From Lepidodermella squamata (taxonomy: Eukaryota; Animalia; Gastrotricha), in contig JBLDXI010000007.1 in NCBI GenBank assembly GCA_047495785.1, forward strand, positions 1,116,001 to 1,180,000: a stretch of DNA of 64,000 bases, given 5' to 3'. Made by a program: the position numbers and the translations under genes. Shown here in pieces: positions 1,714-41,705 of this stretch; position 1 is the stretch's first letter, and each line of letters begins with the position of its first letter. Under the pieces are notes generated by a model. The model ran no database searches and was not told the DNA's origin. It saw only the letters and a program-made list of their open reading frames with translations.

Positions 1714-3055
1714 AGCGATTTGTTAAATCTTGAAAATTTGACTCATCCTGGTATCATCGGGAATGAATCATTTGTCTCATAGTTGACCGTTTTGTCATGA
1801 ACGCATGAAAGCATCAACTTCGATTGTATCTACCAGTTCAGTTTATAGAACGACACGTGGCGACTGCAGTTATGAATGAAACATTAATAAGAATGCTTTT
1901 GATTATAAAAGTAGAACGGCGTGCCAGATTTCCTGAAGCTGACTTAATGCAATACACCAGTGAATAGCGCTTATTGATTCAATAAATAATACGAAATTCG
2001 TTTGATGGCTCTGTTTTGTGGAGGAAAACTTGTAGGGTTTGTATCAAAAAACAAAACACATATGTTGTAGTTGGTATAGTCTCCATTTGATTCCGCGAGA
2101 CCCGAAGATTCCCGGCGGCGATAGAAGTAAAAGCTATCAAGGACCAATATTCGCTGAATTGAGGATTTTTCTGATACCTTGATCCTTGTTTGTATGAATA
2201 GAGCTAGTTTTAAGATAGAGGTCCTACTCCTGACTAAGCCTGTAAACGCCATGGGCACCAAATGTGTGATGAATCAGCATCGAGTGGTTAGAAAAGTAAA
2301 CAAATCAGGTGATTTTCTATCGCTTATTATTCTAGTTCCAGATAGCTCTTGAAACGATGCTCACATTGATTATTTTTTCGAAATTTTAACTATTTTTGAA
2401 ACTCGCAGCCATTTCAATCGCCGCTGGCGTATTTCCATCAAGTAGGCGGTGTAGATCCTCGTTGGTGATGACCATCGATTGATACCCAGATCGGTATCAG
2501 TTATAATATAACGGTCCATGACAAAGGTATGACAGTCAGGCGAACCTGGTGAATATTCCCAATAGGTCAATTGCCACACAATGAATTTCGTATGTAAATC
2601 GTTAATTATGCATAAAATGATCGATTTTCGCCAAGCATTTTTTTGCTAATTTTTTGCTTCGAATTGTTTTAATAACTCCGTAACCATGAGGAATTTTTTA
2701 TAGCGGGCTTCACCAGTCGATAGATCTAGTCTGTTGTAAACTTTCCTAAAATCCTGGTTAAATTGGGATAAAATTTGCGAAATTGGTGACGAAAATGCTT
2801 CTTGTGCTTTTGAAGAAAAAAATCATTCTTGAAAAATGCTATTTTTGCATGTGACTTGGGGCAATCATTTTTCTTGTCAGAGGGTTCAGATTTTGGCGGT
2901 ATTGACATCACTCCCTGCTAAGAATATGGTCCAATTTAGCTTTACTCCAGGAAAATGACAAAAAACGCTAAAACCTGGTAAATAGCATTTTTCAAAAATG
3001 AACTTTTCAAAAATGAAGCAGTAGCACGATGGAATTAAGCAATCTTGGATGGCTC

Positions 3056-3330
3056 AGAATACAGAAACACTTTTCTTGTAGGAATGACTGTATGAATCGA
3101 GGTTCCGCAGGAACCGAAGATGAATACAGTCATGAGTTTTACAGTGTTTCTGTATTCTGAGTAAATCCTAGATTGCTTTTCTCCTCTGTATCTGCTAAAA
3201 ACTCGGAGAAACGTAGCTAGAAAGTGCGGGAAAAAGTGATCTTGTACGCCATTTATATAGGAAAATGCGATAATAAAAAGTCCATCTTAATAAAAGTGTT
3301 TCTGTATTGTACAGGAATACAGAAACACTA
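3056..3330. repeat. Short inverted repeats of AATACAGAAACACT (MITE-like relic)
   Basis: CAGAATACAGAAACACT at ~3056, its reverse complement AGTGTTTCTGTATTCTG at ~3143, and a second inverted pair at ~3295-3329. Confidence 0.55.
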
Positions 3331-3578
3331 TTTCTGTATCGTTTGTTAGCCTCAATCATAGGAGAATAAATTATTTAAAATAGCCTTAAAATGGTTTGGA
3401 GTATCCTATAGTCCAAGCCTCTGAACACTGTTAGGTTCTATTCTATTGAAAATTAGCAATTACAAACTGAACGGGTATATACCGAAGCTACGCTGCAATC
3501 TAACGTTATACACGTTTAACATATTCGGATTATTCGATTCCGATGATACTATAGGATGAATCAAATCTTCAAAAGATT

Positions 3579-4889
3579 TCATAGATCGTACACAAATTTG
3601 TCAATGGTTGTTGCGGACTGTTCGCTGAAGTCGGCCCTGAATCTCTCCCATTTTGCTTGAATCGCCGATTTTACAATTACACTGATGCGATCAAGTAGGC
3701 GAACTGTTCGGGAAAAGTAAGGAAGGGAACTTCGCCCACCAAAGCACATCTGCTTCGATTCTACCATGTTGAACGCCATTTCAAACAGCCTGCGAACATT
3801 CGCCATTTGATAACTGGTACCCGCAACGGTCGCTGAGAAATTAAACAGGCAAAATAGATATGAAATGGGAAGAAAATTTGCTTACGATTGAAAGCAAGGA
3901 GCAAAAAAAGAAGCGCAGATTCGAGAAAGTTCGGGTTCCATTCTTCGAGGATTAAATTACGTCTAGCTCAGGGAACGATTTCTTTATAAGCTTCAGTGTT
4001 TGCGGGTTAACTGTATGCTTGACAGAATTCGACGGCATGGCACAGAATGCAAAGACGATGGGCAGAAGAGACGTAGCTAGCAGCGTCGATTTCTCAATGT
4101 CACCAAAGCCATAAGCTTCTGAAAAATTCAAGTTAAAAATTTGAAAATAATCCGTTGAATTATTGCCTTGCAGAAAGCCAGCAAATGTATCCCCTGTGTC
4201 GTTCAATTGGGCTACCTGCGTCACACTCATTTCTCGAACACGAATTTCATCAATTGGCCCATGGTACATTTTCATGGGTAGCTGAGACAAAGGTACTAGA
4301 TTTTATGCAAATCCAAAAGGAAAGATCTTACAAATTCAAGCCCTAGCAGGAGGGTGACTGCATGGGTAGATGTAAGCAGAGCGTTTTCGACTTCGGAGGC
4401 TCCATCAAATGCAGGCTCGAATGTTAAAGGGGAAGAAATCGACGAGCAACCATCCGACAAATCCAATTTAACAGGTTGAAGTTCGGTTGCAGAGTTGCGC
4501 CTATCATAAGCACCGTTTCCTAAAAAATTACTCAATTTCGTAAATTGTAATTATTAATTGCAGCAGTACCGTGCATTCTAGCTGCAACGCATCGGTCCAA
4601 ACGGCATCGTCCGCAAAGACGGCGAATTTTCGGCTCGATTTTGCAGTTATTGGTACCACTAATACACCTCATTTCGTCGCGGTATATCACATTTCGGCTG
4701 TAATATTTCTGGCAAGCGAAACATATTTTCGGCTGAAACAACTTTCGCCGCGGCACTTTGACGCCACACACCTGTGAAATAGTTTTCTTATTTTGAAAAT
4801 TCCGCCTTAATATCAAAAAAAATAACACATACGCGGCACAACTCGACTCGTCGCTCTTTGCCCTCCTTGGTGCATGATCTATGCGGCAT
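3579..4889 (-). pseudogene. Nuclear receptor paralogue B; probably disrupted by an internal deletion
   Basis: Colinear with copy A (MPHRSCTKEGKERRVELCRVCGVKVPRRKLFQPKICFACQKYYSR...) with the same intron positions. At ~3945-3960 the intron-5 acceptor and the start of exon 6 are missing, and read-through hits TAA (ELDVI*). Confidence 0.72.
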
Positions 4890-6578
4890 GATAACGCTTC
4901 TAAGATCAAATGATAAGCTGAGTTGCAAACATTTAATCATACATATATGTGTTGTAGAATGCATTTCCTATTCCTAGACGCGCGCAGTGACATGATTGAG
5001 TTAAAGACTACGCGTAGGAGTTTTAGTAGCTAGGCGTGGCACATTGCCTGGGAACTACAGCTACTTAATACAATAAATCACTTCGTGAATAGCGATTTTA
5101 GTTCGGAGGTTAGTTCGAAATGTGACTCTGGCGTAGTGTGGAGGAAAACCTGTAAGGTTAACAAAAAGAATAACCGCATATATGGTTGGTAGAGACTTCG
5201 CACTTGTCTTCGCTAGACCCAAAGATTCCGGCGATGACAGAACTGGCTGAGAGACTTCTAACATCCACTCACACTACCGGCACTGCCGTCGACTTAGAAG
5301 TGGTACCGCTCGGACGAGTTGGTATGCTGTTACCACCTGTTCGGTTTCAACTACCAACTACTCCTTTACGGGTTCCAGCGAACGCTTTATTTGGGCCTAG
5401 AAAAAAGACAGACATCCGAATTCAACCAATTTGAGTTTTTAAATTGTAACGCGAAGAGAGGCGCGGAAATATCGAATTTCAGCTTGAAAATTCGACATTT
5501 TTACCTCGGTTGGAGCGTCTGGAAGTCTGTGGTTGGAGTATTTTGTGTCTGACATTTTCGACATTTCAAGAAATTGATGGTTCACGGAACATTTCCGCTG
5601 AATTTGCACTGACTTAAACGCTCAACTCATGGCTATACAAGTTAAATAGTTCTTCGCATTCAATATTGTGTCACTTGAGGTTAATTACATGTGTTTTAGT
5701 GGTTCCTAGCTATCTAAGGGTTTTGAGCCCAACTCAAAGGGTCTCAAAAGTCTGAGAACCCGACCCGCTCCCGGCCCGGCCTGCCTCTTAGCATTTTACA
5801 AACATTTTACAATGATCGAAACTAGATCGTATTTTCCACCGAGAAACCTCAAAACAATTGTTAAAATTCGGTGAAAAATCGTTGAAGGTCAAACTTAGGC
5901 TCGAAAGAAAAGCCGCGTTTAGATCCATCGACAATTGTTTCAATTTCATATTCATTCTTGTCGATTTCCCATTCTTTCATTTGCCCGCTCAAAAAACTTT
6001 AAAATGCATTTTGAATAATTTAGAAAAATAATAAAATCACGAAAAAATAACCATCTCGTTCCTCTTAATATTCTCTTCCCGGTTCCATCAACAAACTTGA
6101 GACAACCAACTCTGATTTAACGGAATCGATCGAACAAAAATCATCTTCTGGAACCCGTAAAGGTAAAGTTGAAACGTAAAGCGTAAAGTTGAAACCGACC
6201 AGGTGTTAACAGCTGATCCAGCAGTTCTGTATGGAAGAGAGGTATCTTTCGATGCCATGCATGACTCATGAATCAGCTGACTGAAATGCGTCTCAGAGGC
6301 ATTAACTTTCAATTCATTTCGGAAACAGGATTCAATGATGTACCTGTATAGAGTTCATCATTTATTTTTCTCTAATGGAACATGCACCCGCTATCCTGAT
6401 TTTTCCTGATTTTTACCTTCGGGCTTGCGGAATTAAAAGATTTCGCGGCCATATAATACGTCACGCGTAATAAATACCTGGATTAGTTAGCCCCATGATC
6501 CTGCGTGGCAAGTGTTCAAAAATAACACTTTTGCCACAAGAAAAAACAATCAATTTCGACCATCGATCAGCAAGCAGC

Positions 6579-8098
6579 ATGGACACGTGTTTCGCATTGA
6601 AAGCTGAAATAACCTCAATTAACCAGTCCTGGTTTTGCCTGGAAGAATACAACGGCACAACAGACGAATGTTTGTTCTCCTACGAGCAACAATTCAATCG
6701 CCAACATACAGGATGTGGCTACTTGGAAGCAGCTCTAATCATTATCGCCGGGTTATGCGTATTTCCATGCAATATTATCGCATTAAAAAACTTCAGGGAT
6801 CGGAAAGTCAACCATGAATTCATGCTGCTAATCACTTCTCTGGTGGCTTGCAACATGGCTTTTGGAGGTCTTGCAATTTACCGCGGAATTTTGAGGTTTG
6901 AAATGAGTGGCAATTTTCCGACAGATTTTCTATATTTTTCCGTGAATTTCAGGGCTACTGACTGGATTGATGCGTATGGCTGTCCTTTTATTTTGACATT
7001 CGGCGGGGCGACTTTCACGGTTTCCTTCTACATTTTCGCCTTAATCAGTATCGAAAGAAATATGAGTGTTCGATCTTCATCTTATGGAAGAAGCATCGCC
7101 ATGCTGACCCATCACATCACAAGGTCACCTATCGCCTATAATTTCCCACAGGCCGGCCGATCCGATCACTATTGGCACCTGGTCGCAGCCATTTTCGGCA
7201 TAGTTGTAACAGTTTCACTCGCCTATTTTGTCCAGCTGGTTAGTGGCGGAGCTGTTCAAACTATGCCTATGGTCATTCGAGGTGTTAGAGGTGGTACTCA
7301 GCCGATCAATGTTTGCGTTTCGTTTACTGCTAGGCAGTTTTTCAGTGGAACCGCTCTAAGCATTGCCTTCGGCTTACTCACCCTGGGAATTCCTCTTTTT
7401 ATTATAATAATTAATTACAGGTAAAATAACTGAAAAAGTCCGCCTTAAAAATAGGTCATCCGTGACATTTGACAAAATTTAAAAAAAAATTTTAAATTAT
7501 ATTGATATTTTAAATTTTTAACTTCGTCTATTCATTTTCTTATTCAATTCAAGACTTGATTAAATAAAAAAATTAATATAAAAAATTTCAAATGAAAATT
7601 ATTTTTTCGAAAATTTAAACTGAAAATCCTATCGATTTATTGCTTTCAAAAATTATTGGTAAATTTTATTTATTTTATAGTTGCCTCTGGCACCATGTTA
7701 GAGCTGTTCACAGGGCGTCAATTCTTCGCAGCAATACGAGTAATGCCGCTGTTAACATGAAACGGCAACGCCGCCGCGAAACCGTCCTAGCTCTTCTGAT
7801 GTTGGCTTCGGTTTCTGAATTCATCCTCTGCATCACCCCCATGATTTTGGCCATCAGTGCTATCAATTACGACGGCGAGTTTGGCGGGCGAAAAATGCAG
7901 TCTTCAGTGCTGTTTTACTCGATTTTCATTCAGGTCATCGATTCGGCTTTGAATCCTTTCTGGTCAAGCTTTGTGATGGTTCGACCAACCGTGAAATCTC
8001 CCAAGCTAGCGACGCCGTTGAATTATTCTCAGAATAATAGTTTAGCTGGAAATCAAAATACGATAGCTTCTGATTCGAACGCAGATGTTCAAAAATAA
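6579..8098 (+). CDS. Rhodopsin-like (class A) GPCR, orphan
   Basis: Seven hydrophobic segments. TM3 ends ISIERN (DRY-like), TM5 GIPLFIIIINY, TM6 FILCITP, TM7 DSALNPFW (NPxxY-like). Intron 7421-7680 and a likely in-frame 57-nt intron 6896-6952. Confidence 0.88.
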
Positions 8099-8162
8099 TT
8101 GAAACACCCTAAAAAAATGTCGTAAAATGATAGGAATAAAAATCTATATTTTATTTCAAGAT

Positions 8163-9554
8163 TCAGTTAAATTCTGCGAACTTCAAGTAATCAGTTATCG
8201 ATTGAGGCAATCCTAATCTATCAATAAAATTTGACCTCAATCCTAATCCCATAGGTAAGCAAGACACAATTTTAGAGCGGCATAGCGCTTGAAGAGATCG
8301 AGGATAAGCTTTCGAACATTCATCAACAAAAATAAAATGAGACCTGGTCAAATTTCGACTTTGAACTTCGATGAATAGCCGAACTTGCGGCAAAGGAAAA
8401 TTATGTCTCGGTCTGCATTCGATGAGAATTTTGCTTAGCATGGCCACAATAGTTTCCTGGTCTGAGTTTTCGGTGGGTAATTCATCAAAATATCGCGTAA
8501 AATTGAACCAATCAGAGCAGTAAGGCCAGTCTAATGATCGATCCCAATCCAAAGGATCAGGATAGCAGAGTGATCCGGATTTGACAAGCGGTAAAATCGC
8601 GTTTTGAATCATGGAACGGCACCTGGGAAAATCGCCCGATTTCAACATTTTTCCAGCGATCAAAAAGCATTCGGCGAGAACTGTTTGAGCCTGACTCAAA
8701 TTTCGCTTCTTCGCTCGAGAAATTATAGAAGAATCGAATTTCGAAGCAGCATCAATAATAGCTTCAGCGGCAGAAATCGCTTTGTATTCGATGAGTTTTG
8801 GGACGTAATTTATTGTAAATTTACCCCAAACCGGGCCTCCAACGATACTTTGAGTTAGAACCCTGACAATCCTACCCAATCGACCCTGCCAATTATCAAC
8901 GGTGCCAATCGATTTAGGCGGTAAATTTTCCAATGAATAAACCAACAAATCGTAGGAAGCATCGGCGCCATTTTCGACTAACAGTTCTACGGCTTGATCG
9001 AAATAAAGCACGACTGCTCGTTGTAATAAATGCGACCTCACGCACCAAGGGACAATTCGGCGATTCGATTGAAAAAATTGCCGCAGACTTGCGATGTCCA
9101 TCGAATTTAAGGCGCACCACAGAAATAGGGCTGAAATTGGCTGAAAAATCTGTACCTGCTTCCCGATCATTCTTCGGTTGATATTTGAAGTAAATTGTTG
9201 ATAAATTTGATTATTTGAATTATCAGTTGGACGTTTTTCGATCCAAACTCGGCATTCCGGGTGGAAATCACTGTCGAAGAGAAGAAGGTTATCCGGCCTA
9301 GTTTTGCTTTGAAACGAGCTATTGATGCGCGACGAAGCGTGAACAGCTCTTCGTCGGGTTACCATTGCGATCTCTTCAGCTGTAGACCGAAGTTCCGTGA
9401 TGAAAGGAACCTCCGATAGAGGACATGAGCAGCCACAAGAAGATGTCGATATTACTACTGGAACTTGCTTCGTGCTAACTGCTAAGCTCGTTTTAGCGCT
9501 GCTTAACTGCCTTCTGTAAGGCAATCTCGCTGAATGTGACATGATTATTTTCAA
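8163..9554 (-). CDS. Ankyrin-like/SOCS-box protein (ASB-like); true start probably internal
   Basis: AVELLVENGAD ankyrin half-repeat; C-terminal SOCS box PRSLQALCRSKIV...IDRLGLPQSITDYLKF. Confidence 0.85.
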   Translation of the reverse strand: MKIIMSHSARLPYRRQLSSAKTSLAVSTKQVPVVISTSSCGCSCPLSEVPFITELRSTAEEIAMVTRRRAVHASSRINSSFQSKTRPDNLLLFDSDFHPECRVWIEKRPTDNSNNQIYQQFTSNINRRMIGKQVQIFQPISALFLWCALNSMDIASLRQFFQSNRRIVPWCVRSHLLQRAVVLYFDQAVELLVENGADASYDLLVYSLENLPPKSIGTVDNWQGRLGRIVRVLTQSIVGGPVWGKFTINYVPKLIEYKAISAAEAIIDAASKFDSSIISRAKKRNLSQAQTVLAECFLIAGKMLKSGDFPRCRSMIQNAILPLVKSGSLCYPDPLDWDRSLDWPYCSDWFNFTRYFDELPTENSDQETIVAMLSKILIECRPRHNFPLPQVRLFIEVQSRNLTRSHFIFVDECSKAYPRSLQALCRSKIVSCLPMGLGLRSNFIDRLGLPQSITDYLKFAEFN

Positions 9555-10165
9555 AAATTAATTGTCCTAAGAAAGCTGAAAGGTTCGAACTTTATTTTGT
9601 GCTCTGGATTGGCTTTAGCCCGGAACAAAAAAACTAGCAAACGGAAGTTCCCACTTCAGCGAATTGCCTTCATTTCTCGTGCAGCCAGACTTCCTAGACT
9701 TGCTATCAACAAAAACGGGCTTTTTGAAAAATTTCTTATACTCAGTATTCCTAAAATTTTCAATCCATATTGGTCTGATTGCGCGCTGAAATTTTCGAAA
9801 TCTTGAAATTCAGCCAATTATCTTTAATTTTAATTGTTAATTTAATTTAGGGTCTTTGGTCACCCTTATAAGTTAATTTTTAAGAGAATCCTGCTTTTTT
9901 TCTGCAATAACCCTTAATTTGTTGATTGGTGATTTCTAGAGTCGGAAAAAAATGGCCGCTCAGCTGCCTGGTGCAGTTGGCATGGGGCGGAAACGAAGGT
10001 AACGAGTTCCTTAGCGAAGAACAGGCGCCGTAATTTATTGATTAATCCTAGTTTTTTTTCGACATCGAACAATTCAGAAAACACAGCCACAGCTCAAAAG
10101 AAACAAAACAACGGCGAAATATAAATTCATCAATTTCCAATATAATTGGCGGGTTAAAGAAATCT

Positions 10166-11371
10166 TCAACAAATTTTAATATCGAATTCGTCAAAATTAA
10201 GGTAGCTTTTCAAGCAAGGCGGTAACATTGAAAGACTAAGGATTGCTTGATCGCGGGCCTTCAGGCCGCGAGGTAGCTGATCGATAATCACATGTCGGCA
10301 TAAGGATTGAAGTTTGAGGGGGAAACTCGCCCTCACGGCCCGGCCAAATTTCCGATATTTCATTACGAGATCGTTATTTTTATCAAAATCATCAACATGA
10401 GAAACTATTTGAGAGGATGAAATAGGGCCGAAACCAGCTGTCAACAATTCGAGAAATTTCGAAGGTCGAAAATAAAATTTGCGTCGAAGTTCGAAAAGCA
10501 AGTCAATAAAAACATTTGACCGGCCCCAAATTAACGAGGAAAATTTTTCGATTTCACAATAAAATAATGGTAGATTTGTAGGAATAGCCGGCAACTCTTC
10601 AAAAGGGTCAGGCGATAAAAAACCGCCAGATCTCAAAATAGGCAACAATGCGAAAGAAATAATTTTCAAAGTATTTAAAAGATTAAAACCGAAATAAACA
10701 TTTGAATTAAGGAGGTCGTAGAACACAGCTGACAGTGGCGTGCATTTTGAATAAGGAACAATTGAAAAAGCGGCGAAATTCGCGGATTCAACGATGCGGA
10801 ACGCAGCTTCTCGACCATACTGAGCGATGTAAGCCAATTTATGAAGAGCCGTCGTATTACGGCCGTAATACGTCTCGTCATTCGACCACTGATAAGGCAG
10901 ACCAGGGTCTCGGATCGAAACATCGGCGCCATGTTCGATAAGAGACGTGATGATGCTGGTGAAAGCTGCTGAGTTCTTCCGAAACTGGCCCTCAGGAATT
11001 CGATACATCACCCCAGGCCCATTTATGTTGATCACATGAGTCATTGCGACTGAATCGTTGCCAGTTCGAAAGTCCTTAGCCGGGTGGTTCGGGTTGGCGC
11101 CGTGTTTGAGCAGTAATTTGACCCCGTTCGCGAATAATCGGTCACAGGCGCGTAATAAACATCTCGCAAATGAGTCTGGCGTAATGAATGAGTCAGTTCG
11201 GCTGAGGACTGAGGCTAGGGTTGCCTCATCGTGGTCATCAATTACCTCGCCCAGAAGCTCCTCGATGTTGTACGAACAACAGCTAGCATTATTCACGGCT
11301 AATTTCGCCTCTTCGACTAGAACGTCGAGTTGAATTTCGATATTGTCAAGTTCGAATTGAAGCTCAAACAT
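10166..11371 (-). CDS. Ankyrin/SOCS-box protein (ASB-like), single long ORF
   Basis: VKLLLKHGANPN, LIEHGADV, TALHKLA; SOCS box PLKLQSLCRHVI...LPPCLKSYLNF. Confidence 0.9.
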   Translation of the reverse strand: MFELQFELDNIEIQLDVLVEEAKLAVNNASCCSYNIEELLGEVIDDHDEATLASVLSRTDSFITPDSFARCLLRACDRLFANGVKLLLKHGANPNHPAKDFRTGNDSVAMTHVININGPGVMYRIPEGQFRKNSAAFTSIITSLIEHGADVSIRDPGLPYQWSNDETYYGRNTTALHKLAYIAQYGREAAFRIVESANFAAFSIVPYSKCTPLSAVFYDLLNSNVYFGFNLLNTLKIISFALLPILRSGGFLSPDPFEELPAIPTNLPLFYCEIEKFSSLIWGRSNVFIDLLFELRRKFYFRPSKFLELLTAGFGPISSSQIVSHVDDFDKNNDLVMKYRKFGRAVRASFPLKLQSLCRHVIIDQLPRGLKARDQAILSLSMLPPCLKSYLNFDEFDIKIC

Positions 11372-11454
11372 TCGAAAAAAATCTAAAATTTTTTTTAAAA
11401 AATAATTAACTGATTTTTAAACAATTTATTAGACTAAATTAAATTAAGAAAAAT

Positions 11455-12981
11455 TCACAAAGCCGTGGGTAGAATTTCAAATTCTTTAAAATTAAGGTAG
11501 CGATTAACGCATGGCGGCAAGTCAAGTGAATTGATAGCTTGGGATCTTGGCACCAAGCCAACAGGTAGTTGATTCAAAATCACAGCTCGACAAATCGATT
11601 GCAACTTCAAGGGCAGTCTCGATTTTGCGAATCTCAACGCACCTTCAGGCGTAGCTCCATCAAACGCGAGATTCTCTTCAGGTCTCGTGAAGGTCCAAGC
11701 TTCGTCCAACGATGTCGGGTAAATGCTGTCCTCATCAACAGGTTTCCAGCTGGATGATCGGCGGCATTCTAAAATCAGGTCAGCAAAAGCCCCGCGGCGG
11801 CCCCATAATTTCAAATCCACGGCGGCAGTCAAATCGTTCCGCCTTAAAATCGCCAATAAACTACTTCCCATTAGAGGGTAGGTCAAAAAATCGAAAGAAA
11901 GTACGGCACCGGCTCTTAACATAGGAAGAAGAGCGTTTTGAACCAATTTCGCCAAAATCGAACTCGCAGTAGCTTGAATCCCGTAGATGAAGTGGAAAAC
12001 CTGTTCGTGGTGCGATAGCATGTGCAAAATATCGTCACCCTCCAACATTCGACGCTGCCCAACCAGCTCGTCCAGGGCGATAACGTAGTACCGGCTTCCC
12101 AAACGAAGCGTGACGGCGAGACAGGAGTACAAATTCGGCTCCCGATACTGCGCAACGTTTCGATCCAACAAATTTCCGGCACTTGTCGCTTCGATTATCG
12201 CCTGGGGGACTTCGGATCCGTGAATCGCTAAATAGGGTGTTTGAAAAACAGCACAAGCGTCGGCTATACTGTAATCATCGACACTGGCATTGACATCAGC
12301 GCCGTGGGAAATCAGCAGTAGCACTATAGAATTAGCCCGGCGAATTTTCACATCGCGATTTCGGCCATCTTGAATAGCTGTGAATACGTCGAAAGCTCGT
12401 CTCAAGGCGATTTCGTCCGGGTTGATCTCAGGCGTGTAGTAGCTTCGCCACGTCCAGTTCGGCGAAACGCCAGCCTCCAGCAAAATTCGAATACCGTCTT
12501 CGAAAATCGTTGAAATCGCCTGGCTGAGGAGTGAGGCGAGTTGGCACTGTGCCAATGACTTCAAATCGCCGCCTATTAAGGCGGATCTTAACGCATCGGC
12601 GCTTTTCATATTGATCGCACAGGTGATTTTCAAAGCTAGGATGATTTCAGGGTAGCCGTTGTTATTCGGGTAGTTGTTCAAAGATTCAATCATTGATTGG
12701 TACAGGCCTTTGATTGTACCTCGGGCTTGTCGAATTTCTTCTGGTGTTAGGAACACCCGGGTTGTATGGCGGTAGCGAAGGTGCAGCTGTGAATGATCGC
12801 CTTCGAATTCGATTTCGAAGCTAGCGTTTGTTTGCTGGTCGATAAGGGCTGTTGACATTTGTAGGGCTCGGTACGTTACGCCGGCCATACGACCTGAATA
12901 TCCACCGTCTCGGATGAAGGGACATTCGCTGCAGTGGCACGGCACAGTACTATGCCGCCATTTGCCTACTAATCTAGCCAT
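11455..12981 (-). CDS. Ankyrin/SOCS-box protein (ASB-like), single long ORF
   Basis: IRILLEAGVSPN, LLLISHGADVNA; SOCS box PLKLQSICRAVI...LDLPPCVNRYLNF. Confidence 0.9.
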   Translation of the reverse strand: MARLVGKWRHSTVPCHCSECPFIRDGGYSGRMAGVTYRALQMSTALIDQQTNASFEIEFEGDHSQLHLRYRHTTRVFLTPEEIRQARGTIKGLYQSMIESLNNYPNNNGYPEIILALKITCAINMKSADALRSALIGGDLKSLAQCQLASLLSQAISTIFEDGIRILLEAGVSPNWTWRSYYTPEINPDEIALRRAFDVFTAIQDGRNRDVKIRRANSIVLLLISHGADVNASVDDYSIADACAVFQTPYLAIHGSEVPQAIIEATSAGNLLDRNVAQYREPNLYSCLAVTLRLGSRYYVIALDELVGQRRMLEGDDILHMLSHHEQVFHFIYGIQATASSILAKLVQNALLPMLRAGAVLSFDFLTYPLMGSSLLAILRRNDLTAAVDLKLWGRRGAFADLILECRRSSSWKPVDEDSIYPTSLDEAWTFTRPEENLAFDGATPEGALRFAKSRLPLKLQSICRAVILNQLPVGLVPRSQAINSLDLPPCVNRYLNFKEFEILPTAL

Positions 12982-13570: not shown

Positions 13571-13652
13571 GGTGGTGTGGCCGAGTGGTCTAAGGCGCTA
13601 GATTTAGGCTCTAGTCTCTTCGGAGGCGTGGGTTCGAACCCCACCGCTGCCA
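13571..13652 (+). tRNA. tRNA-Leu (TAG)
   Basis: GGTGGTGTGGCCGAGTGGTCTAAGGCG; anticodon arm CTAGA-TT-TAG-GC-TCTAG; long variable arm; GGTTCGAACCC; followed by a T5 Pol III terminator. Confidence 0.96.
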
Positions 13653-13719
13653 ATTTTTGAAATGGGAAATTTAAAATTAGGAACTACAAATAATTTGAGT
13701 TGATGTTCGTTCTCAGACA

Positions 13720-13791
13720 AGCAGAGTGGCGCAGTGGAAGCGCGCTGGGCCCATAACCCAGAGGTCTGTAGATCGAAACTACGCTCTGCTA
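13720..13791 (+). tRNA. Initiator tRNA-Met (CAT)
   Basis: AGCAGAG...CTCTGCT acceptor stem with A1:U72; three consecutive G-C pairs in the anticodon stem around CAT; GATCGAAA T-loop typical of eukaryotic tRNAi. Confidence 0.96.
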
Positions 13792-13908
13792 ACTGTCGCA
13801 CTATTTTTAATCAGAATTTCGAAGTAAATAAGGAATAACCAAATGACTTCAGTACCCACTTATGGTCCAACTGCCGAGCGGGGTCGATCGCGTGGACCTT
13901 TGGCCACT

Positions 13909-14068
13909 AAACTTACCTGGCACTGGGATGAACCGAGCTCAGCAAGTCGGTCGCCCCAGGGCGAGGCGGGCCATTGCACTGCGGTCCGCTGGCCCCTTGC
14001 GCTCTGCCTCATCGGTGGAGTCGGGTGCAAAATATTTCACTTGGGTACCGGCGTTCGCGCCTCACCCG
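13909..14068 (+). ncRNA. U1: U1 spliceosomal snRNA (variant)
   Basis: 5' AAACTTACCTGG; helix H GCACT/GGTGC; SL1 with loop GCTCAGCAAG; SL2 GGGCGAGGC...ATTGCAC (U1A site); SL3; SL4 GGCG-TTCG-CGCC; ~160 nt. Confidence 0.92.
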
Positions 14069-14395
14069 CGAATTACAAAATAAATTGTCAACATTATGTA
14101 TCGCCCTGCTGGCCCTCGATGGACTAGATCAAGTAATAGAATATTTGTGAATACTATACCCTGCAGTCTCCTGTAAAATCAGCTTGTTACGGTTTCTTGG
14201 ATAAAAAAATTGAAAATGCAACAAATGACACGTCATTTATTTTACTTACATTAAATGACCCTACATTCAAGCAGTAAAATAGCATCAATATAAATCAGAA
14301 AATTACTCTGCGAAGCTCAGCTTTATACTGTAGCATCGGAGAAGAATTGGTTCCTTAAATAAAATAAACGAAACTTTTACTCAAAGTTGTTGGGA

Positions 14396-16801
14396 TTAAA
14401 TTCTCTTGATCGTAAAGTAGATGTTCGCGTGAATACCAATAAATGCAGCTAGAGCGACAAGGAAAGCAATGATGTCGATAAGCCTTGCCACAGTGATGCG
14501 TTTCTTCAGGATTCCACCGATCATCTCACCTCCTCTGCAGCACGCTACCAGCCAAACAGTCGCCATTTGGTAAATCGTGATAGCTGCAGCGAAGAACACC
14601 AGTTGCATGATGTATTCACCCAATAGGGAGCGATTTTCAGTCTGAGGCAATACTGATCTTACGTCAGCCTGGGCTACGACCAGGGCTAGAAGCGATGTGA
14701 CTGTGAAGGTCGGTCTTTCAGCAGTTTCAGGCAGCAAGAAAAACGTCAACAGGTTGATGGACGACAGGACAGCACTAGGCAGGGCCAAATTAACGAGATA
14801 GTAGTCAGGGATTCGTTTGATCCTAATTGAAAAATTAGCGGCATGAACGGTTTCCCCCATGAAGATTCGAATTGACGTCTCCTTCCCCAGCTGAGTCAGC
14901 CGCCACTTGTCCGTCACATTGCTCTCAGCCCAATCAAAATAGATGGCTGAAAATTGGACTCGGTCATAATTTCGAACCATTTGAAACGTAAAGTCGCATT
15001 CCTGGGTGTCGAATGGGAAGTTGTCGAGATTCAGCGGACAATCCGACTCCAGCAGGCCTTCCCTTACCCAGTAGAAACTCAGCGTGACGTTGTCCCCCTT
15101 TTCAGGCACATCCATGTAAACAGTCAGATCTTGAGCATAGCCGTCAAGATGGTAGTTGGACGTAGCTGTCGATGTGAATCTGGCATAAGGTAGCCAAGCT
15201 TCATCCGCAGATGTTACCTGCAATTTCTGACCCCGAGCTAAGTACATATTTTGCGCTTTATTCGAACAAGTTGTTACGTTCCATTTCGCCAGCATAATAA
15301 CGTCAATTGCAATCTTCTGCGCCACATTATCGACATCCCGAAGCGAGTTGACGATAAGAACAAAGCTGACAAGGTTCGGTGAATCGTTGTTTGGTGGGAA
15401 GGCCCTCAAGGCCGAAAAATCTTCACAATACGGTTTGATTTCGGAAAGTTGTATCGGATTTAGCTCATAACTTGGAATTTTCGGGATGTATTGTTCTAGT
15501 GGTGAGCTAGCAAACCTAGCGAAAGATGAGGGTTCAGCCGTTGTAAGAGGATATGACACCGTTTTAGATGATCCAATGACAGCAGGAGTTGTTGCTTTAC
15601 TTGTAGTCCAGCTAGTAGTTGGTGACACGGTTGTCGTAGGTGTATTAGAGCTTGATGCTTTCGAAGTTGTCACCGATGATGTCACCGGTGTCGTCGATGT
15701 GGATGGAGTCGTCGAGCTCTTTGTCGTTGATGTCGATGCTGTAGTCGTAGACGTGGTGCTGGTGGTCACTGTTGTTGTCGTCGGTGGGACAAACCCTCCA
15801 ACAGCTGGTTCCATTGCAACGGGCGTTGCCGCAGTGTTAACAGTTTCGAACGAGTACAGTTTTCCCTCAACTCCTGGCGAATATTTCTCGCCGTTTTCAG
15901 CAGCGACTCCGATGACATAGGGACCACCGGTAGCGAACCCTGTTATTGCTTTCGATTGCACGATAGTTTTACTGTCCCCGTTACAGTTGCGAAGCTGGAC
16001 CTTCGATTTTAAAAGCTGCTTTATCTCGTGGCAAAATTATATGCTCTAACTCACGTTCAAGATGTCGTTTCCTATCGTTATGGTGTACGTATGATTTCCG
16101 TAAGGTAAATTTCCTAAAGGAAAATCACCCACCACTTTTGGAGTGTCATACCAAGCCTTTGCCGGGTCAAAGTAGGTTGTAGCGTTTTGAAAATAAACAT
16201 AGGCTAATTGATTGTCGTAGTAGCATTCAACTATCAAGCCTCTGATTGGTTTCTTCATGAAAATAGTATGTGGCTCGACTGGAAAATAATCAATAAATGG
16301 GCAATTAGCTCATCATTTTCCATCAAATTATTAATTACATACAGGCTCCAAATGATTGGAGAGAATTTGGTTGAAGGATGTAAATCAACAATCCGTCGGA
16401 CTTTGTTAAGGCGGGGCTAGTGATGCCGAAAGAAACAGTTAAATTCAAACCAGTGACATCGTTCATCATCTATGGTACAAGCCTTGAACCTTTGTCTGAC
16501 GAAACTGTAACATCAACATACTTTCTTTGAAACCAATACATAAGCAGCCTTTTCTAGTTCGTAGAAAGGAAACCCGGCGCTTCCAGCTGGAACGATTGGC
16601 AACGTCTGGCTTACAGTAGCGTTTTTAACGATATAATACCAGTTATCGATATCTAAAAAGTACTTGGATATTTCCTCTCCCAATTAGAAGATGATTACCT
16701 GTATTATTTCCGAAGAAGGTGAATTCAGGTAAGATGACTCCCGATGGTTCGGAACCGGGCAAAACCATCCAAAAAATGCATAAATTAATAGCGAGAAACA
16801 T
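14396..16801 (-). CDS. Cys-loop (pentameric) ligand-gated ion channel subunit with N-terminal LamG/TSPN-like domain and Thr/Ser stalk (~729 aa, 5 exons)
   Basis: Exons 16801-16699, 16652-16522, 16469-16343, 16278-16055 and 16000-14396 splice in frame through GT-AG introns. Signal peptide MFLAINLCIFWMVLPG; Cys-loop CPLNLDNFPFDTQEC; KRIPDYY-M1; M2 AERPTFTVTSLLALVV; four TMs. Confidence 0.88.
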
Positions 16802-18110: not shown

Positions 18111-19190
18111 TTATTCAACAGTTCCCGCTGGACTGTTCTTCGACATCAATTTTTTCAGAAATTTCAAGGTTTCATCTCGTTTGTTATTCACAGCTCGAGC
18201 GTACGGGGTTTCACCATCACACTTCAAATAAACAAGTTCAGGCTTCAAATCACACAAATATTTGACAACGCTAAGGTTGCCGTTTTCCGCAGCTCGATGA
18301 ATGGCCGAAAAATTGGCCAAACCCCATTTTCTAGAAATAGATGTGACCAACGTAACATCAGCGCCATTTTCGACAAGAACTTTCAGAACGTCGAGATAGC
18401 CCTTCTCTGCGGCTACCATTGCAGCAGTTATGCCCTGCCAGTTTGTTTCGTTCACCTTGCAACCTCGGGATAGAAGCCATTCAACCAAATCGACTCGTCC
18501 TGATGTCGTAGCCGCCGTCAAAACTGACTGATCTCTGGCGATTTTCTTAGAAGTTAAAATCCCAGGATCGACGGTGACTAAATACTTGAATACATCAATA
18601 GCGTCATTTCCTAAGGCGGAGTGCGCTGGGCTTGGGGTCCCGTGACCAGCAATTCTTGTCTTGGCACCCAATCGGACCAAGGTTCGGACTGTTGGCAACT
18701 CGTGAGATATGGCAGCACGGTGTAGAGGCGTGGCATCTGCCATATCTTTACAATCAATATCCACGTTCATCTGTTGGACCAAGTAACAGACAATGCTGGG
18801 GCTACCCGCATCTGCAGCCTTATGAAGCGGAGTGAATCCATATTCGCCACGAGCTTCAGCCAATTTTTCATCCACGCGGCATAATATTTTTACGGTCTCT
18901 AGAGAGCCGGCGCAACATGCCAGGTGTATTGGCAAGGCGTCATCTTCGCGCATACTGCTCCGGCTCTCGTTCCGGGTCTTGGCCCAGATATCGGCGCCCT
19001 GTGTGACAAGATAGGAGGCGAGATCCGCGTTGCCGTTATAACAGGCGTAGTGCAAAATGCGCTTCGAATCGGCCCATGGATCGGCCGATTCGAGGGCATA
19101 TTTTCGGCAATCTGCCGGCAAATAGGAAAACACGTCTTTAATCGCTGCCAAATCGCCGGCCTCAGCAAGAGTGTGAAGCCATCGAATCAT
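18111..19190 (-). CDS. Multi-ankyrin-repeat ORF (unit 1); possibly the last exon of the upstream RING gene
   Basis: About 9 ankyrin repeats (TPLHKAA, TPLHRAA, GADV); paralogous to 25254-26321. Confidence 0.9.
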   Translation of the reverse strand: MIRWLHTLAEAGDLAAIKDVFSYLPADCRKYALESADPWADSKRILHYACYNGNADLASYLVTQGADIWAKTRNESRSSMREDDALPIHLACCAGSLETVKILCRVDEKLAEARGEYGFTPLHKAADAGSPSIVCYLVQQMNVDIDCKDMADATPLHRAAISHELPTVRTLVRLGAKTRIAGHGTPSPAHSALGNDAIDVFKYLVTVDPGILTSKKIARDQSVLTAATTSGRVDLVEWLLSRGCKVNETNWQGITAAMVAAEKGYLDVLKVLVENGADVTLVTSISRKWGLANFSAIHRAAENGNLSVVKYLCDLKPELVYLKCDGETPYARAVNNKRDETLKFLKKLMSKNSPAGTVE

Positions 19191-25253: not shown

Positions 25254-26321
25254 TTATTGATCAATTTCGTCACCCATCAAAGATTTCAAATATTCAGCCA
25301 CTTCAGTTTGATTCTTTTTTACAGCTCGAAAATAAGCAGTTTCACCACTCGTGCCTTTCATCCTGACAAGTTCCGGCTTCAATTCACACAGGTATTTGAC
25401 AACTTCCAATCGCCCCATAGCCGCAGCTCGATGAAGAGCCGTTCCATTGTCGAGCTTGCTCATCGACTCACTAACCACTGTAACATCCGCGCCATGCTCG
25501 ACCAACAGTTTCAGCAGTTCGAGCTTGCCGCTACCAGCCGCTATCATAGCCGCCGTTTCACGACGAAAGTTTTTCGCGTTGACGTCACAGCGACGAGATA
25601 GCACCCATTTTACGAAGTCGATCGAACCTTTTTCAACAGCTGCAATCAAAACAGATCCACATTCGGCGAGTTTTTTCGACCTCAAAATACCAGGATCTGA
25701 CTTGATCAAATACTTGGCAACGTCGAAATTGCCGTTAATTATAGCAGTATGAACAGGGGTGCTATTCATATCGCCTCCTTCTCTTGTTTTAGCACCCAAT
25801 TTGACCAACATTTTCACAGAGGGTAAATGGCCGTTACCAGCGACTCGGTCCAGCGGCGTAGCGCCGCCCATATTTCTCGCATTAACATCGGCATGCATTT
25901 CTTCGACTAGATACCGAATTATTTCCGGGCTCTTACCATCAGCCGCGTCGTGAAGTGGGGTTAGTTGGTAATTTTCGCGGGCTTTCACTAGATTCGGATC
26001 TTTTTCGCACAGAATTTTCACGATTTCCAAATGGCCGTTGTCACAAGCGAGATGAATTGGTAAAACGTCATCGTCGAAGAATTTTTCCCGCGTTTCTGTA
26101 TGAGGTTTGCCCCAAACATCGGCGCCGCAGTCGTGGACGAGGTATCGAACAAGGTCGACATGGCCGTTCTTACTGGCGTGGTGTAGCATTCGATAATTTT
26201 CGGACCAGCTATCGGCGTATTCGACGACGTAGTTGACGCAGTCGGGTGGTAGGTCTTCGAAAACTTCCTTGATTCCGGCTAAATCGCCCTCGTCGACCAA
26301 GTATTGAAGGTTCCGCGCCAT
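25254..26321 (-). CDS. Multi-ankyrin-repeat ORF (unit 2); possibly the last exon of the upstream RING gene
   Basis: TPLHDAA, TALHRAA and GADV repeats; colinear with 18111-19190. Confidence 0.9.
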   Translation of the reverse strand: MARNLQYLVDEGDLAGIKEVFEDLPPDCVNYVVEYADSWSENYRMLHHASKNGHVDLVRYLVHDCGADVWGKPHTETREKFFDDDVLPIHLACDNGHLEIVKILCEKDPNLVKARENYQLTPLHDAADGKSPEIIRYLVEEMHADVNARNMGGATPLDRVAGNGHLPSVKMLVKLGAKTREGGDMNSTPVHTAIINGNFDVAKYLIKSDPGILRSKKLAECGSVLIAAVEKGSIDFVKWVLSRRCDVNAKNFRRETAAMIAAGSGKLELLKLLVEHGADVTVVSESMSKLDNGTALHRAAAMGRLEVVKYLCELKPELVRMKGTSGETAYFRAVKKNQTEVAEYLKSLMGDEIDQ

Positions 26322-33740: not shown

Positions 33741-34916
33741 ATGGCATCGTTCTTCGTTTTGCTGATACTGATGGCTAAGCTCGCGTCGATGGGAGCTGCT
33801 TTGTCGACTGCTGAAGAGTTTGCAGCGAAATTTGCTAAATTTTGTCCGGCAGTTCGGTCGAAAAGCCTAACAATGGAGCAATCACTTTATTCAAATTACA
33901 GCCGTCCGATTGTCGTGAAAATCAACATGATCCTTTATCGTTTTGTTGACATTGACGACGTGGAGCAAAGACTATCTCTACTTGGGTATCTGTCTTATGA
34001 ATGGGGGCTGCCATGCGAAAGCCCGAAATGTACGGATTTACTGACTGAAACAGAGTGCATGATGTTCAATCCTGCCAGGCTTTTCTACCCAGTCCCAGCT
34101 TTAGACATTTGGACTCCAAGGATCTATCATTTGACAGCCAGTGAATCACCTGTTTTCAATCGCAAATTGAGTGACCAGGTCTGGATCTTTCCATTTTACG
34201 AATCGAGATCTATGAATTACTACACTTTCGATCGATTCGACGTCTCATGCACTTCCTTCAGCTACCGCAAATTTCCTTTCGATACGCAATCCTGCACGAT
34301 GATTTTTGAATGCGATGATGTTCTCGAAGACGTGGTGCTCAGCCTCGAATCATTTCAAATCGATGTGTCAGCCCGTGATACCTTCATTGTTGATACTGAC
34401 ATATGGTCTGTTGTCGAGCCACTCGAGCATAGCAGCTACACATCCTTGCAGGCTAACGGCGCTTTCAATGTAAGCCGAGTTAACATGACCGTTCAATTTC
34501 GACGGAAAAGAGGCTACTACGTCTGCAACATCTTCGTGCCAACTATTACTCTGTTCATTCTTCAAGTCGTTTCTCTATTAACCGAGCCAGTGAATCGAGA
34601 CCAATCAGCGTTTTGCGTTACAGTTGTGCTTTCCTACGTTGTTTTCCTCACTATGATTTTTGACATGGTGCCAAAAACTTCAGATCATGTCTACCTTGTG
34701 TACATGGTAGCTTCTAAATTCATCTTTGCAGTTCTAATTACGGCATATACTTGTTTGAGTCCTAGTTTTCCTGAGTCGCTAAAATCCCGTGTTGTCAAGT
34801 TAAATAAATCTCTGGACATACCAATCGGTCGTCTTCTGGACCTGGTAATGGCTGCAGCTGCAGGTCTGATTGTAATGGTTATTGACGCAATTCTTTTCTT
34901 ACTGATGTTATCTTAA
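33741..34916 (+). CDS. Divergent Cys-loop ligand-gated ion channel subunit, intronless
   Basis: Signal peptide, IWTPRI, CTSFSYRKFPFDTQSC, RRKRGYY-M1, M2 DQSAFCVTVVLSYVVF, PKTS, short M3-M4 loop, M4. Confidence 0.92.
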   Translation: MASFFVLLILMAKLASMGAALSTAEEFAAKFAKFCPAVRSKSLTMEQSLYSNYSRPIVVKINMILYRFVDIDDVEQRLSLLGYLSYEWGLPCESPKCTDLLTETECMMFNPARLFYPVPALDIWTPRIYHLTASESPVFNRKLSDQVWIFPFYESRSMNYYTFDRFDVSCTSFSYRKFPFDTQSCTMIFECDDVLEDVVLSLESFQIDVSARDTFIVDTDIWSVVEPLEHSSYTSLQANGAFNVSRVNMTVQFRRKRGYYVCNIFVPTITLFILQVVSLLTEPVNRDQSAFCVTVVLSYVVFLTMIFDMVPKTSDHVYLVYMVASKFIFAVLITAYTCLSPSFPESLKSRVVKLNKSLDIPIGRLLDLVMAAAAGLIVMVIDAILFLLMLS

Positions 34917-35680
34917 CGTCTTCCTTCTTCTGCTGTGCATCCTGGTTAGAATTTGTACCTATTTACAACCATTCCGTGATTTCCAAATTCTCAAATCTGT
35001 CACCTAAATCTCGAGCTTCTTTGAACATTATCAGTCTAATTTTTACTATGGTTCTCAACAATATTTTTTGTGTTTCGATTGGTGTTTCATGAAATATCTC
35101 ATGAAATTTATTTCATATATTTTTCATATATTTTCATTGTTCTCTATACAACGATTTTGCTATCTTGCGGTAGAGTTCTCAACCTTCAAATGGACAATTG
35201 AACATGGAAAACTGAATTTGACCAACCAGACTGCTATTTAGGCGGCACCTGTGAGATGGCTGGATAATTTTGCTGCGATGAGCGTTCGATAGGCTTAAGC
35301 TCTTAATAAATAATCACAAATAAAAATATCAGAATCGCGCGTATGATCTACATACAATGAATGAAGGGCCTAGAAGTAAATTCTGAACCCGTTGACTAGG
35401 CAGACGTTTCGATAGTTTCATAATTTCAAAATTTGGCTTCGCTAAAGATTTTCGGAGAAAAAGTGTTTTGTCTCTCTTTGTCCAAATAGTTGCGCCACCG
35501 GCACCACCTAGATTCACCTACCAGCTTGTCTACACGTGGCGCATTATTAGTGGTAACTTAGACGCATTGTAGAGGAAGAAGAAAAACGCAGCCAGATGCT
35601 GCCAAACATCTCATGTGCTCATGAGTTGGAACCGCTACAGAATCAATCAACCATTTTCAAAATTAGTACAAGGTAAAAGA

Positions 35681-37587
35681 ATGCGTGAAGTAGCTGTCTT
35701 CATCGCTATATTGCTTCAAAATGGCTTGTGCCAAAGTCGCGTTCAAAATCTCGAATTCCTCGCGGCCGGGTACAGTTTGTACCACGGAAATCCCCACTGG
35801 ACACCGCCCGCCGCCATCGACCCCGGCTTCCGTGCTAGCATTTTCGATCTCACAGTAACCAGCGGGTCTGAACAACTGACCAGCGACGGAGCATCGATAT
35901 TTCACCGCGGCATCGACGTTAAACTTTGCTCAGCATGCAGTCTCAACTTCAAGAGCAGCCTTTCGAAATCAATGAACGACTACGTTGAATCCCTTCGAGC
36001 ATCAGTGAAAGTAACCGACCCAGTTCTACATGGCGCGTTTGCCGCAAGTGATGACTACAAAACTGTCGAGCAGCTGATAGCTATTGGACGCAGGCTAGTT
36101 GTCGAATCATTGGCTACTTGCGTCACTCATTGCGCAACGCTAAACATGTACGACTCGCCGCCATTCACCGGCAACTTCAAACAGGCCGTTTCAGGGTTGC
36201 CCGATCATTATGACAACGAGACTATGGAAGAATTCACGGAGTTTATCGACCACTTTGGCACGCATTTTGTTACATCAATGCAACTCGGCAGTATTTTCGG
36301 GCTTCGTGGAGCAATGTGCCGGAAACGGGTTGAGCGGCTTCAAAAATTTGGCGTCAATATTGAACAGGCGGCCAGCCATTCTGTTCTGGCTGAGTTATCT
36401 GCTTTTAATCAAATTTTGTACGCCAGCAATCAATCAGTGTTCACGGCAAGTAATGAAGATTTGGAGGCCATTCGGCTGTTTAAACGTTTCGTCGAGGCCT
36501 TGAACTATATTAGTTTGGGTGCTCGACCTCCAGCGAGTGGATTATCAGCCGAGTGGTTAGCAGCATCGGCTATAGAGCCGGCACCAGTGAGTTTCTTCAA
36601 AATATTTTCATTACATTTTTTCATTTTTCTAACTTTCCAGGTTAGTATCTCCGTCATGCCTATTACGAAACTGCTTACACGGACGAGGTTTGATTACGAC
36701 ATCGAGTCGCGACAGAAAGCTCTCGAAAAAGCTGTAGCTGAGTATTGCAATAAAACGTTACACGGAAAAACGATCACCTCTCATTGCCTGGCGGCTTCAA
36801 AAGTCGACATGTACAATTTGGGACACCACGCACGGCGTAAGATTATTTATTATGCAAGGTCCTGTCTTATTTTTTATTTCCCTAATAGCGAAGCCGCCGA
36901 GGTATTTCGTCATGCCCACTCGAACTGGGTATCGGTTCAGCGACGCCCAAGCGGCTTGTGTTAGCCAAGAGGCCAGACTTGCTATCATTAAAACTGTTCA
37001 AGAACATGCGCTGGCCAAAGCTGCATTCAGCGGTACGTTTTCTCGAAATATAGCCATTCGAATTTAGAAAATGAGTACCGTAACACGGTGTAATTGTTGA
37101 CAGGATAACCTTGGAATCTTAAGGCGTTGATGATTATTTTAGGGTTGAACGCTAAAACATGCATAACATTTTTTTGAGCAAAAGCTGAATTTAAACCTTT
37201 AAACTTTAAAACTTTTTCCGAAGTTTACAGTATAATATGTTTGTAGCTGCTCGCCCGTACTGTGCTTGGATTGGCTTAACGGGCGGCGTAGGAGCTTGGC
37301 AGTGGTTAGATGGCACGAAGCCAGAGAATTTCTACCGTGACGGCTGGCAACCGTGGGAGGGTGCCACTGGTCCTGTCGAAATGTGCGCGGCCATGTGTCA
37401 GGGCAAGGTTGATAAGAAAATTCGTATCTGAGAAATATTATGAATTTTCATCTTTATATAGGGTATTGTTGGATGGGCGGACTTGCACTGCGACCTGTCT
37501 TGGATGACGCAAGGTAATGGCCCAGTAGCGGCGCTATGCGAGCGTGTCGATGTGAAACCGCATCCAGATGAAATTCCGGACTGCTAA
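35681..37587 (+). CDS. Secreted MACPF (perforin-like) protein fused to a C-type lectin domain (5 exons)
   Basis: Signal peptide; GYSLYHGNP...DPGF; FIDHFGTHFVTSMQLG (MACPF signature). CTLD: AQAAC...LA, WIGL, WQWLDG, C...WADLHC...ALCE. Exons join in frame. Confidence 0.88.
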
Positions 37588-40371: not shown

Positions 40372-41705
40372 ATGCACATGAGAATGGTTTTAACCGTCTT
40401 CTCAACAATTTTCTTGGCGATCATCTTTGTTAGAGAAGGTTTGGCTCTGGGCAATGTCAGTGGCAGTTCGGCTAATTACAACCCAGATGCTCTGCGCGAT
40501 ATGTTCTTCGAGCTTTGCCCGTTAGCAAGATCCAGCAATCTGCCAACGTCGTTCCACAGAAAGATTAATAACTTCTCGGTACCCATCCAAAGTTACTTTG
40601 TAACTCGTCTATTAGCAATCAACGATGTCAGCGATGTTACAATGAGGTATTCTAAATTGTTAAGTTAATAACATTCATCCATCATTCATCATTCCAGCAT
40701 GACAATATCCATGACATTGCGTATCTATTGGGACATGCCGTGCGGCGAAGATATAAGGGAGCAGTTGTGGCCGGGTTACTCGGCTTTGAGCCAAACATTA
40801 CTCGATAGGATTCAATTCGAAGTTCCAATCGATCAAGTATGGTGGCCGGACATGGAACATATAAACGCTATTGGGGAGACACGACCGTTGCGAGGGTAAA
40901 TATCTGCTGAATTTAAAAAATTCTGCTTTTGGTTGGAAATTCCAACCTGAAACATTAATTAAAAATTCATTTCAGGGAAAGGTTGATAAAAGTGCGGCCA
41001 TTTCTCGTTACTGGGCCGAGATTTGTCATTTACACCGTGCGGACGTTTCAATCGAACTGTTTTCAGTTCAGCTACACCAAGTTCCCATTCGATGTTGCAA
41101 CTTGCACCCTCGAGTTCGAAAATGAAAATCTCAACAACGAGGTTAATCTTGCGATCGATTCAGTTACCGTTGCCTACTTATATAAGCCCCTCCGGGACGA
41201 TGACATTTGGACTTTCCAGACCTACAATGGGACAGTTTATGACTTCGGTGGTTATCCGCATGTCACTGTTACTCTATCTCTGAAACGGAAGTTTCAATAC
41301 TACGTCGGAAATGTGCTTCTGCCAATGTTCACGCTCTTTATCCTCCAAATTCTCTCTTTAATTATGGACCCTGCGCATCCGGATCGGCCCAATTTTTGTG
41401 TGACGATAAATTTGTCTACCGCAGTTTTACTCTCCCTAGTATTTTCGCTGATTCCTCGAACGTCGGAGAACGTTTATTTGATCAATGTCCTAGTCAGCTT
41501 TATGTTGATCTGCGCACTTCTCACGGCTTATGCCCTGATCACAAACAGTCTCAGCACTTGGAAACCGGCTCGACAAAGAATTGGAGCAAAATTGTTCCAC
41601 GGAGGGATCAAGGTAATCAGGGTTGCGGACCTGGCGATGGCAATAGCTGCATTCATCACTGGCATGGCAGTTGTTACACACTATGGAGTCAAAATGTTGG
41701 CTTGA
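40372..41705 (+). CDS. Divergent Cys-loop channel, tandem paralogue 1 (3 exons)
   Basis: ORFs at 40372-, 40699- and 40983- join through GT-AG introns; VWWPD, CFQFSYTKFPFDVATC, KRKFQYY, four TMs. Confidence 0.92.

Follow-up and report, generated by a model that had tools for sequence, protein, structure and literature searches.

U1 is the RNA that locates intron starts, and its Sm site and the loop bound by U1-70K are among the most conserved RNA-protein contacts of eukaryotes. The window analyzed here, a stretch of 64,000 nucleotides from the gastrotrich Lepidodermella squamata, contains a U1 gene in which letters at both of these contacts differ from those of textbook U1. The locus raises the question of whether the gene is a variant copy with a role of its own, a copy in decay, a sign that the recognizing proteins have changed, or the regular U1 of its lineage. 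Our analysis favors the last of these. The gene is probably the lineage's ordinary many-copy U1, carrying tolerated drift that has been fixed by concerted evolution.

The gene occupies positions 13909-14069 (161 nt) on the forward strand, as its parts described below also do. It was found using cmscan with the Rfam model RF00003, which it matches over the full model (1-166, non-truncated) with a score of 95.7 bits as compared to a gathering score of 69.5 (E = 1.1e-22). The preliminary description had called it a U1 snRNA, and this score bears that out. A second U1 was not found in the window, even with a permissive scan at E ≤ 1. Helix H and stem-loops I-IV are all present. The 5' splice-site pairing arm ACUUACCUG (13911-13919) and the stem-loop II loop AUUGCAC (13973-13979), which is the U1A/SNF site, were read from the sequence and are intact, as described before; the loop is also placed by the cmscan alignment. 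The U1-70K site, loop GCUCAGCAAG of stem-loop I, is located by the same alignment at 13937-13946. The Sm nonamer AAUAUUUCA (14031-14039) lies in the single strand between helix H and stem-loop IV, and stem-loop IV (14042-14069) carries a UUCG loop, as supported by both the cmscan alignment and a free-energy fold.

The preliminary description also had all helices pairing, which is nearly the case: approximately 41 of about 46 model pairs are standard, but five pairs (10 positions) are marked as non-standard on the NC line of the cmscan alignment. At approximately 28 further positions (14 pairs), marked ":" in that alignment, pairing is preserved with non-consensus letters. Free-energy folding recovered the cloverleaf, with a four-way junction, an unpaired Sm stretch and stem-loop IV. 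The energy of this fold was no improvement over that of shuffled sequences (z = -0.75), and thus the fold by itself proves nothing. A separate count of pairs, made by MAFFT and RNAalifold against the background sequences introduced below, misaligned stems III and IV; it was discarded and the cmscan alignment was used instead. Score, architecture and three of five sequence hallmarks place the window gene in the U1 family. The remaining two hallmarks are loop I, which has 9 of the 10 letters of GAUCANNAAG, and the Sm site, which has 7 of the 9 letters of AAUUUNUGR in the right place and single-stranded.

U1 genes from metagenomes served as a background for the deviating letters. They were retrieved with a search pattern in which the 5' arm, the motif GGCAC and the U1A loop were fixed, and loop I and the Sm site were left unconstrained. 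GGCAC was picked in order to avoid vertebrate-type U1 (GGCAG), and hence human contigs, and none of the fetched loci looked human. At least 120 loci were fetched, and removal of partial, duplicate and chimeric ones left 73 unique invertebrate U1 sequences among the matches listed. This background is biased by its one search pattern and few host groups, although the direction of the result is still clear. A close relative of the window U1 was not found among the metagenome matches listed, which contain only distant U1 genes and were used as background, not as kin.

When the Sm nonamer was compared to AAUUUNUGN, the best match in the window had two mismatches, as opposed to none in 69 of the 73 listed background sequences. 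At Sm position 4 (14034) the window has an A, while the listed background has U in 72 sequences, G in one and A in none. At Sm position 8 (14038) it has a C, versus 71 sequences with G, two with U and none with C. Loop I position 2 (13938) is a C in the window and an A in 72 of the 73 listed sequences, with G in the one remaining and C nowhere. The RNA begins with AAA in the window and with AUA in all 73 listed sequences, a deviation beyond those that the preliminary description had noted. The three letters of the Sm site and loop I are absent from all of the listed background U1, so the deviation is real, and the earlier report of a non-consensus Sm site stands as far as positions 4 and 8 of AAUAUUUCA are concerned. 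The report of an altered loop I stands in part. The C at 13938 is unusual, but the other difference, at loop positions 6-7, is ordinary variation. Those positions vary freely in the background, where the GC found in the window is common, and 30 of the 73 listed sequences deviate from GAUCANNAAG somewhere. This leaves a single unusual letter in loop I, the change of A to C at 13938. In a rough MAFFT alignment with the matches listed, the mean identity of the window U1 to the background was 63%, versus 81% within the background. The Sm stretch, used as an exact pattern, had no match in viral_contigs or genome_contigs, and a literature search for AAUAUUU in combination with snRNA turned up only unrelated papers.

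Other copies of the gene were sought in the Logan contigs of four public runs, each belonging to a different study (X1, X2, X3 and X11). Contigs were placed on 13800-14300 at 80% likeness, a region that leaves out both of the tRNA genes located upstream. Of the words sampled from 13850-14120, no public run contained a fraction above 0.36, and no run is recorded as RNA. In X1, the unique 3' flank of the gene (14083-14300) was matched without difference at a word depth of approximately 78, and X1 thus carries the window locus. The summed depth in X1 over the U1 body was approximately 2,600-12,000, exceeding that of the flank by a factor of 30-150. Contig depths added together do not give a copy number, yet such an excess is as expected of a many-copy gene. 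In total, 59 contigs were placed from X1, 35 of them at ≥99% likeness. Across 14005-14068, no alternative letter reached 10% in the contigs of X1, X2, X3 or X11, a result to be read with the proviso that contigs drop rare variants and that canonical copies might escape if they were few or fell below 80% likeness.

The runs X2, X3 and X11 represent other organisms or samples, and they contain the same Sm stretch on contigs with flanks unlike those of the window. In the contigs of other organisms, matching ends at 14068, with loose ends from 14068 onward in X2 and X11. A long contig from one of the organisms, designated organism B, has five listed differences from the window within the upstream flank 13868-13885, as compared to differences only at 13992 and 13997 within 13909-14023, and the U1 gene body is better conserved than its flank. 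Judged by these contigs, the window U1 looks to be the major, many-copy form and to be common to related organisms.

These results separate the two possibilities that the preliminary description had offered, a functional variant U1 snRNP or a lineage-wide shift in recognition. Minor variant U1 genes of the vU1 type are outnumbered by a canonical major U1. The form found here is instead in the majority, its body depth far exceeds that of the flank and no other letter attains 10% in 14005-14068. Given this dominance among copies and the lack of any alternative Sm letter at that level in the contigs of the four runs, the reading as a variant copy is not supported. The lineage-wide character of the change, by contrast, is upheld by the identical Sm site in the contigs of other organisms.

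In loop I, the change of C to A at 13938 was seen in two X1 contigs (388.8 of a depth of 4960) and in one of three X2 contigs. Among the copies, loop position 2 is thus mostly C, with A as a minority state. One X1 contig combines this change with C to G at 13943, giving GAUCAGGAAG. One X2 contig has A13936 changed to G together with U13947 changed to C, a double change that preserves the loop-closing pair of stem I. The U1 family contains at least three loop I types (window 13936-13951; runs X1 and X2). In human U1, the main U1-70K contacts of loop I are G28, U30, C31, A32, A35, A36 and G37, and A29 closes the loop via a trans Watson-Crick/Hoogsteen pair with A36 (PMC4383343). The window loop has the equivalents of all of these contacts, and only the equivalent of A29 is changed. 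Since one edge of cytosine presents both an amino donor and a ring-nitrogen acceptor, a C-A pair of the A29-A36 kind is plausible in the window loop. The occurrence of either C or A at loop position 2 among copies argues against a strict new requirement of U1-70K.

The Sm nonamer of the window is spaced 2 nt from helix H, the same distance as in human U1, and was mapped to the pockets of the ring without gaps. In the predicted arrangement, the two leading A's enter SmF and SmE, U enters SmG, A enters SmD3, and the following U's enter SmB, SmD1 and SmD2, with C and A thereafter. In the human U1 snRNP, G130 stays out of the SmD1 pocket, and G132 contacts none of the key pocket residues, being stacked instead between Arg47 of SmD2 and Lys20 of SmD1 (PMC4383343). 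The window has a U in the SmD1 position, as does U4, and its C at position 8 corresponds to human G132. SmD3 is predicted to be the only ring pocket that receives a different base as compared to the human U1 structure. The sections of PMC5131778 that cite Weber 2010 describe the SmD2, SmG and SmB pockets as strictly uridine-specific, and all three of them receive U in the window nonamer. The sections of the same paper that cite Raker 1999 describe single substitutions of U121-U124 in the U4 nonamer as hardly affecting Sm core assembly in vitro. We also weighed a register displaced by 3 nt, AUUUCAC, and rejected it, since the uridine-specific SmD2 pocket would then receive A, SmF would receive U and the spacing would be altered.

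The changed positions (the SmD3 pocket, G132 and A29) are the least base-specific in the human structures, and thus a shift in recognition is not required. The suggestion of a shift in Sm/U1-70K recognition is accordingly weakened on the side of the proteins, the more so as copies still differ between C and A at loop position 2, and is retained as regards the lineage. In humans, Gemin5 recognizes A-U-U-U at positions 2-5 of the nonamer (PMC5131778). The window reads A-U-A-U at these positions, so that a Gemin5-type check, if present, would see a weaker site.

The window copy differs from its family at the junction of stem-loops II and III (13992-13997), where letters specific to this copy were recognized from the contigs of the four runs. 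The G at 13992 is private to the window copy; all contigs placed from the four runs have A. The position lies within an internal loop of stem-loop II, and most of the listed background U1 have A there as well, in the motif CUGAC. The equivalent G does occur in some apparently intact metagenome U1 (L010, L089 and L090). The T at 13997 is lacking in about half of the depth. Based on its letters, the window copy may be fully active or slightly impaired. The preliminary description had argued from the preserved stems against a dead copy, which is reasonable for the family, but the window copy itself has the private G at 13992.

Upstream of the gene, approximately 80 bases are common to other copies and to the U1 locus of organism B. 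The stretch 13826-13908 has at least 80% likeness to other U1 copies, and among the contigs listed, four from X1, one from X2 and one from X3 run from the U1 body into it. This sharing fits an external polymerase II snRNA promoter, and the stretch is a candidate external (PSE-type) promoter on the forward strand. Two tRNA genes precede it on the same strand, namely a tRNA-Leu(TAG) gene (13571-13652) and an initiator-type tRNA-Met(CAT) gene (13720-13791) that is followed by a T5 run and lies 117 nt upstream of U1. Together with U1 they make up a Leu/iMet/U1 cassette at 13571-14069, with gaps of 67 and 117 nt. The T5 run ends the tRNA-iMet unit and separates the tRNA from U1, and a T run of four or more was not found in the 330 bases after 14069. 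These two features led us to reject transcription by polymerase III or by read-through from the tRNA.

The contigs of X11, a run that is only guessed to be RNA, cover 13910-14068 and none of the window flanks. One X11 contig has a strand-switch joint at 13910, where 14012-14043 of the opposite strand is joined directly to 13910, a fold-back such as cDNA synthesis makes at the 5' end of an RNA. This joint hints that the 5' end of the relative's U1 RNA is at 13909 or 13910.

The surrounding window holds several open reading frames (ORFs) that were recorded alongside the U1 locus. Two 240-aa ORFs (40983-41705 and 49173-49895), 8.2 kb apart, are 84% identical without gaps. Both have hydrophobic stretches that resemble membrane helices, and the pair may represent exons of Cys-loop channel-like genes arranged in tandem; a Neur_chan_LBD domain is present in other ORFs of the window (14396-15961 and 33741-34916). 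On the reverse strand, at 8163-12981, three adjacent long ORFs (463, 401 and 508 aa), all of which terminate in a SOCS box and one of which has an ankyrin repeat, look like a tandem family. Further ankyrin-repeat ORFs are found at 18111-19190 and 25254-26321. For a MACPF ORF (35615-36964), a word-based protein search at 1e-10 returned no relative. A weak match to Rfam RT-3 on the reverse strand at 47882-48046 (21 bits versus a gathering score of 40.5; E = 0.9) is most likely due to chance.

Under the reading that we prefer, the U1 RNA would be made by RNA polymerase II from the upstream promoter. The arm ACUUACCUG would pair with 5' splice sites, loop I would bind U1-70K and loop II would bind U1A, and an ordinary seven-membered Sm ring would sit on AAUAUUUCA. 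Four letters set this RNA apart from textbook U1, namely U to A at Sm position 4, G to C at Sm position 8, A to C at loop I position 2 and U to A at nucleotide 2. These would be lineage-specific drift at places where the proteins presumably read loosely, and concerted evolution would have fixed them in the gene family. Co-evolved proteins are not needed for this reading. Observations that speak against it include the A-U-A-U in place of the A-U-U-U that Gemin5 reads, and the private G at 13992, which perhaps marks a weaker copy. In addition, Sm positions 4 and 8 are clearly constrained in other animals, and this leaves room for a compensating change in protein.

A compensating change of this kind could involve the SmD3 pocket, perhaps those of SmD1 and SmD2, and U1-70K, all altered to fit the three letters, in which case the locus would reflect co-variation of RNA and protein and not neutral drift. 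The occurrence of the three letters in none of the 73 listed background U1 is in keeping with such a history, as is their dominant and unvarying state here and in relatives, which is how a compensated change would look. The unusual overall divergence of this U1 (63% versus 81% mean identity in the rough MAFFT alignment) points the same way. The structures nonetheless suggest that the altered letters fall where the proteins demand least, and copies still carry either C or A at loop position 2, so we regard co-evolved recognition as unlikely. It is also conceivable, though distinctly improbable in our estimation, that the major spliceosome of the whole lineage runs on a U1 that presents adenine to the SmD3 pocket and lacks a G behind its U run, by way of matching SmD3/SmD1/SmD2 changes, a loss of Gemin5-type proofreading, or both. 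If true, this would be a natural example of co-variation between an Sm site and Sm proteins.

The remaining alternatives concern the copy and the type of its core. A functional family might include a decaying or silent copy at the window locus, considering that G at 13992 is in no contig placed from the four runs and that none of the contigs listed matches the window's own upstream flank exactly. Decay would nonetheless have left only one private letter in 161 nt, at a position where some apparently intact metagenome U1 have the same G, and the upstream stretch and tRNA cassette are intact; we therefore give this reading little credence. As for the core, the C after the U run might indicate a U7-like or otherwise altered Sm core in which Sm-like proteins replace part of the ring. 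The stretch AUUUCACUUG at 14034-14043 does fit the U7 motif RUUUNUCYNG (PMC5054213) at all but one of its 10 positions, but a short motif with one mismatch is weak evidence. A 3-nt shift in register would be needed, an A occupies a position where the core UUUNUC requires U, and the RNA, which is the bulk U1 of the animal, is otherwise without likeness to U7. We consider a U7-like core to be extremely improbable.

A bulk U1 with A at the SmD3 position and no G after the U run amounts to a natural tolerance experiment, one that would show which contacts are truly needed by the Sm ring and the assembly machinery. Annotators of this genome should treat this type of U1 as normal and not mark it as a variant or a pseudogene. 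Aside from its interest for tolerance, the window gene is an ordinary U1.

In comparison to human U1 (PMC4383343), the window gene is alike in its length, its four stem-loops and helix H, its arm ACUUACCUG, its AUUGCAC loop, the 2-nt spacing between helix H and the nonamer, and the UUCG on stem IV, and it has 9 of 10 loop I letters and 7 of 9 Sm nonamer letters in common. It is unlike human U1 in having A at Sm position 4 (the SmD3 pocket), C at position 8, C at loop I position 2 and A at nucleotide 2, and in stem sequences that are strongly diverged with their pairs preserved. What it shares with the deviant Sm site of U7, RUUUNUCYNG (PMC5054213), is that the U run is followed by C and not by G. 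A U7-type Sm site would require a shifted register and leave a core mismatch, and there is no histone-pairing arm; the window RNA is a complete U1, and its Sm site is not of the U7 type. Like the human vU1 genes, as far as the accounts in PMC10870369 and PMC8457000 extend, the gene belongs to a multigene U1 family with variants in protein-binding sites. In those accounts, human vU1 are minor copies beside a canonical major U1, whereas in the window's lineage the non-consensus form is the major one. The copies nearer to the consensus, with A at loop position 2, are the minority here, unlike the human vU1 arrangement that those accounts describe.
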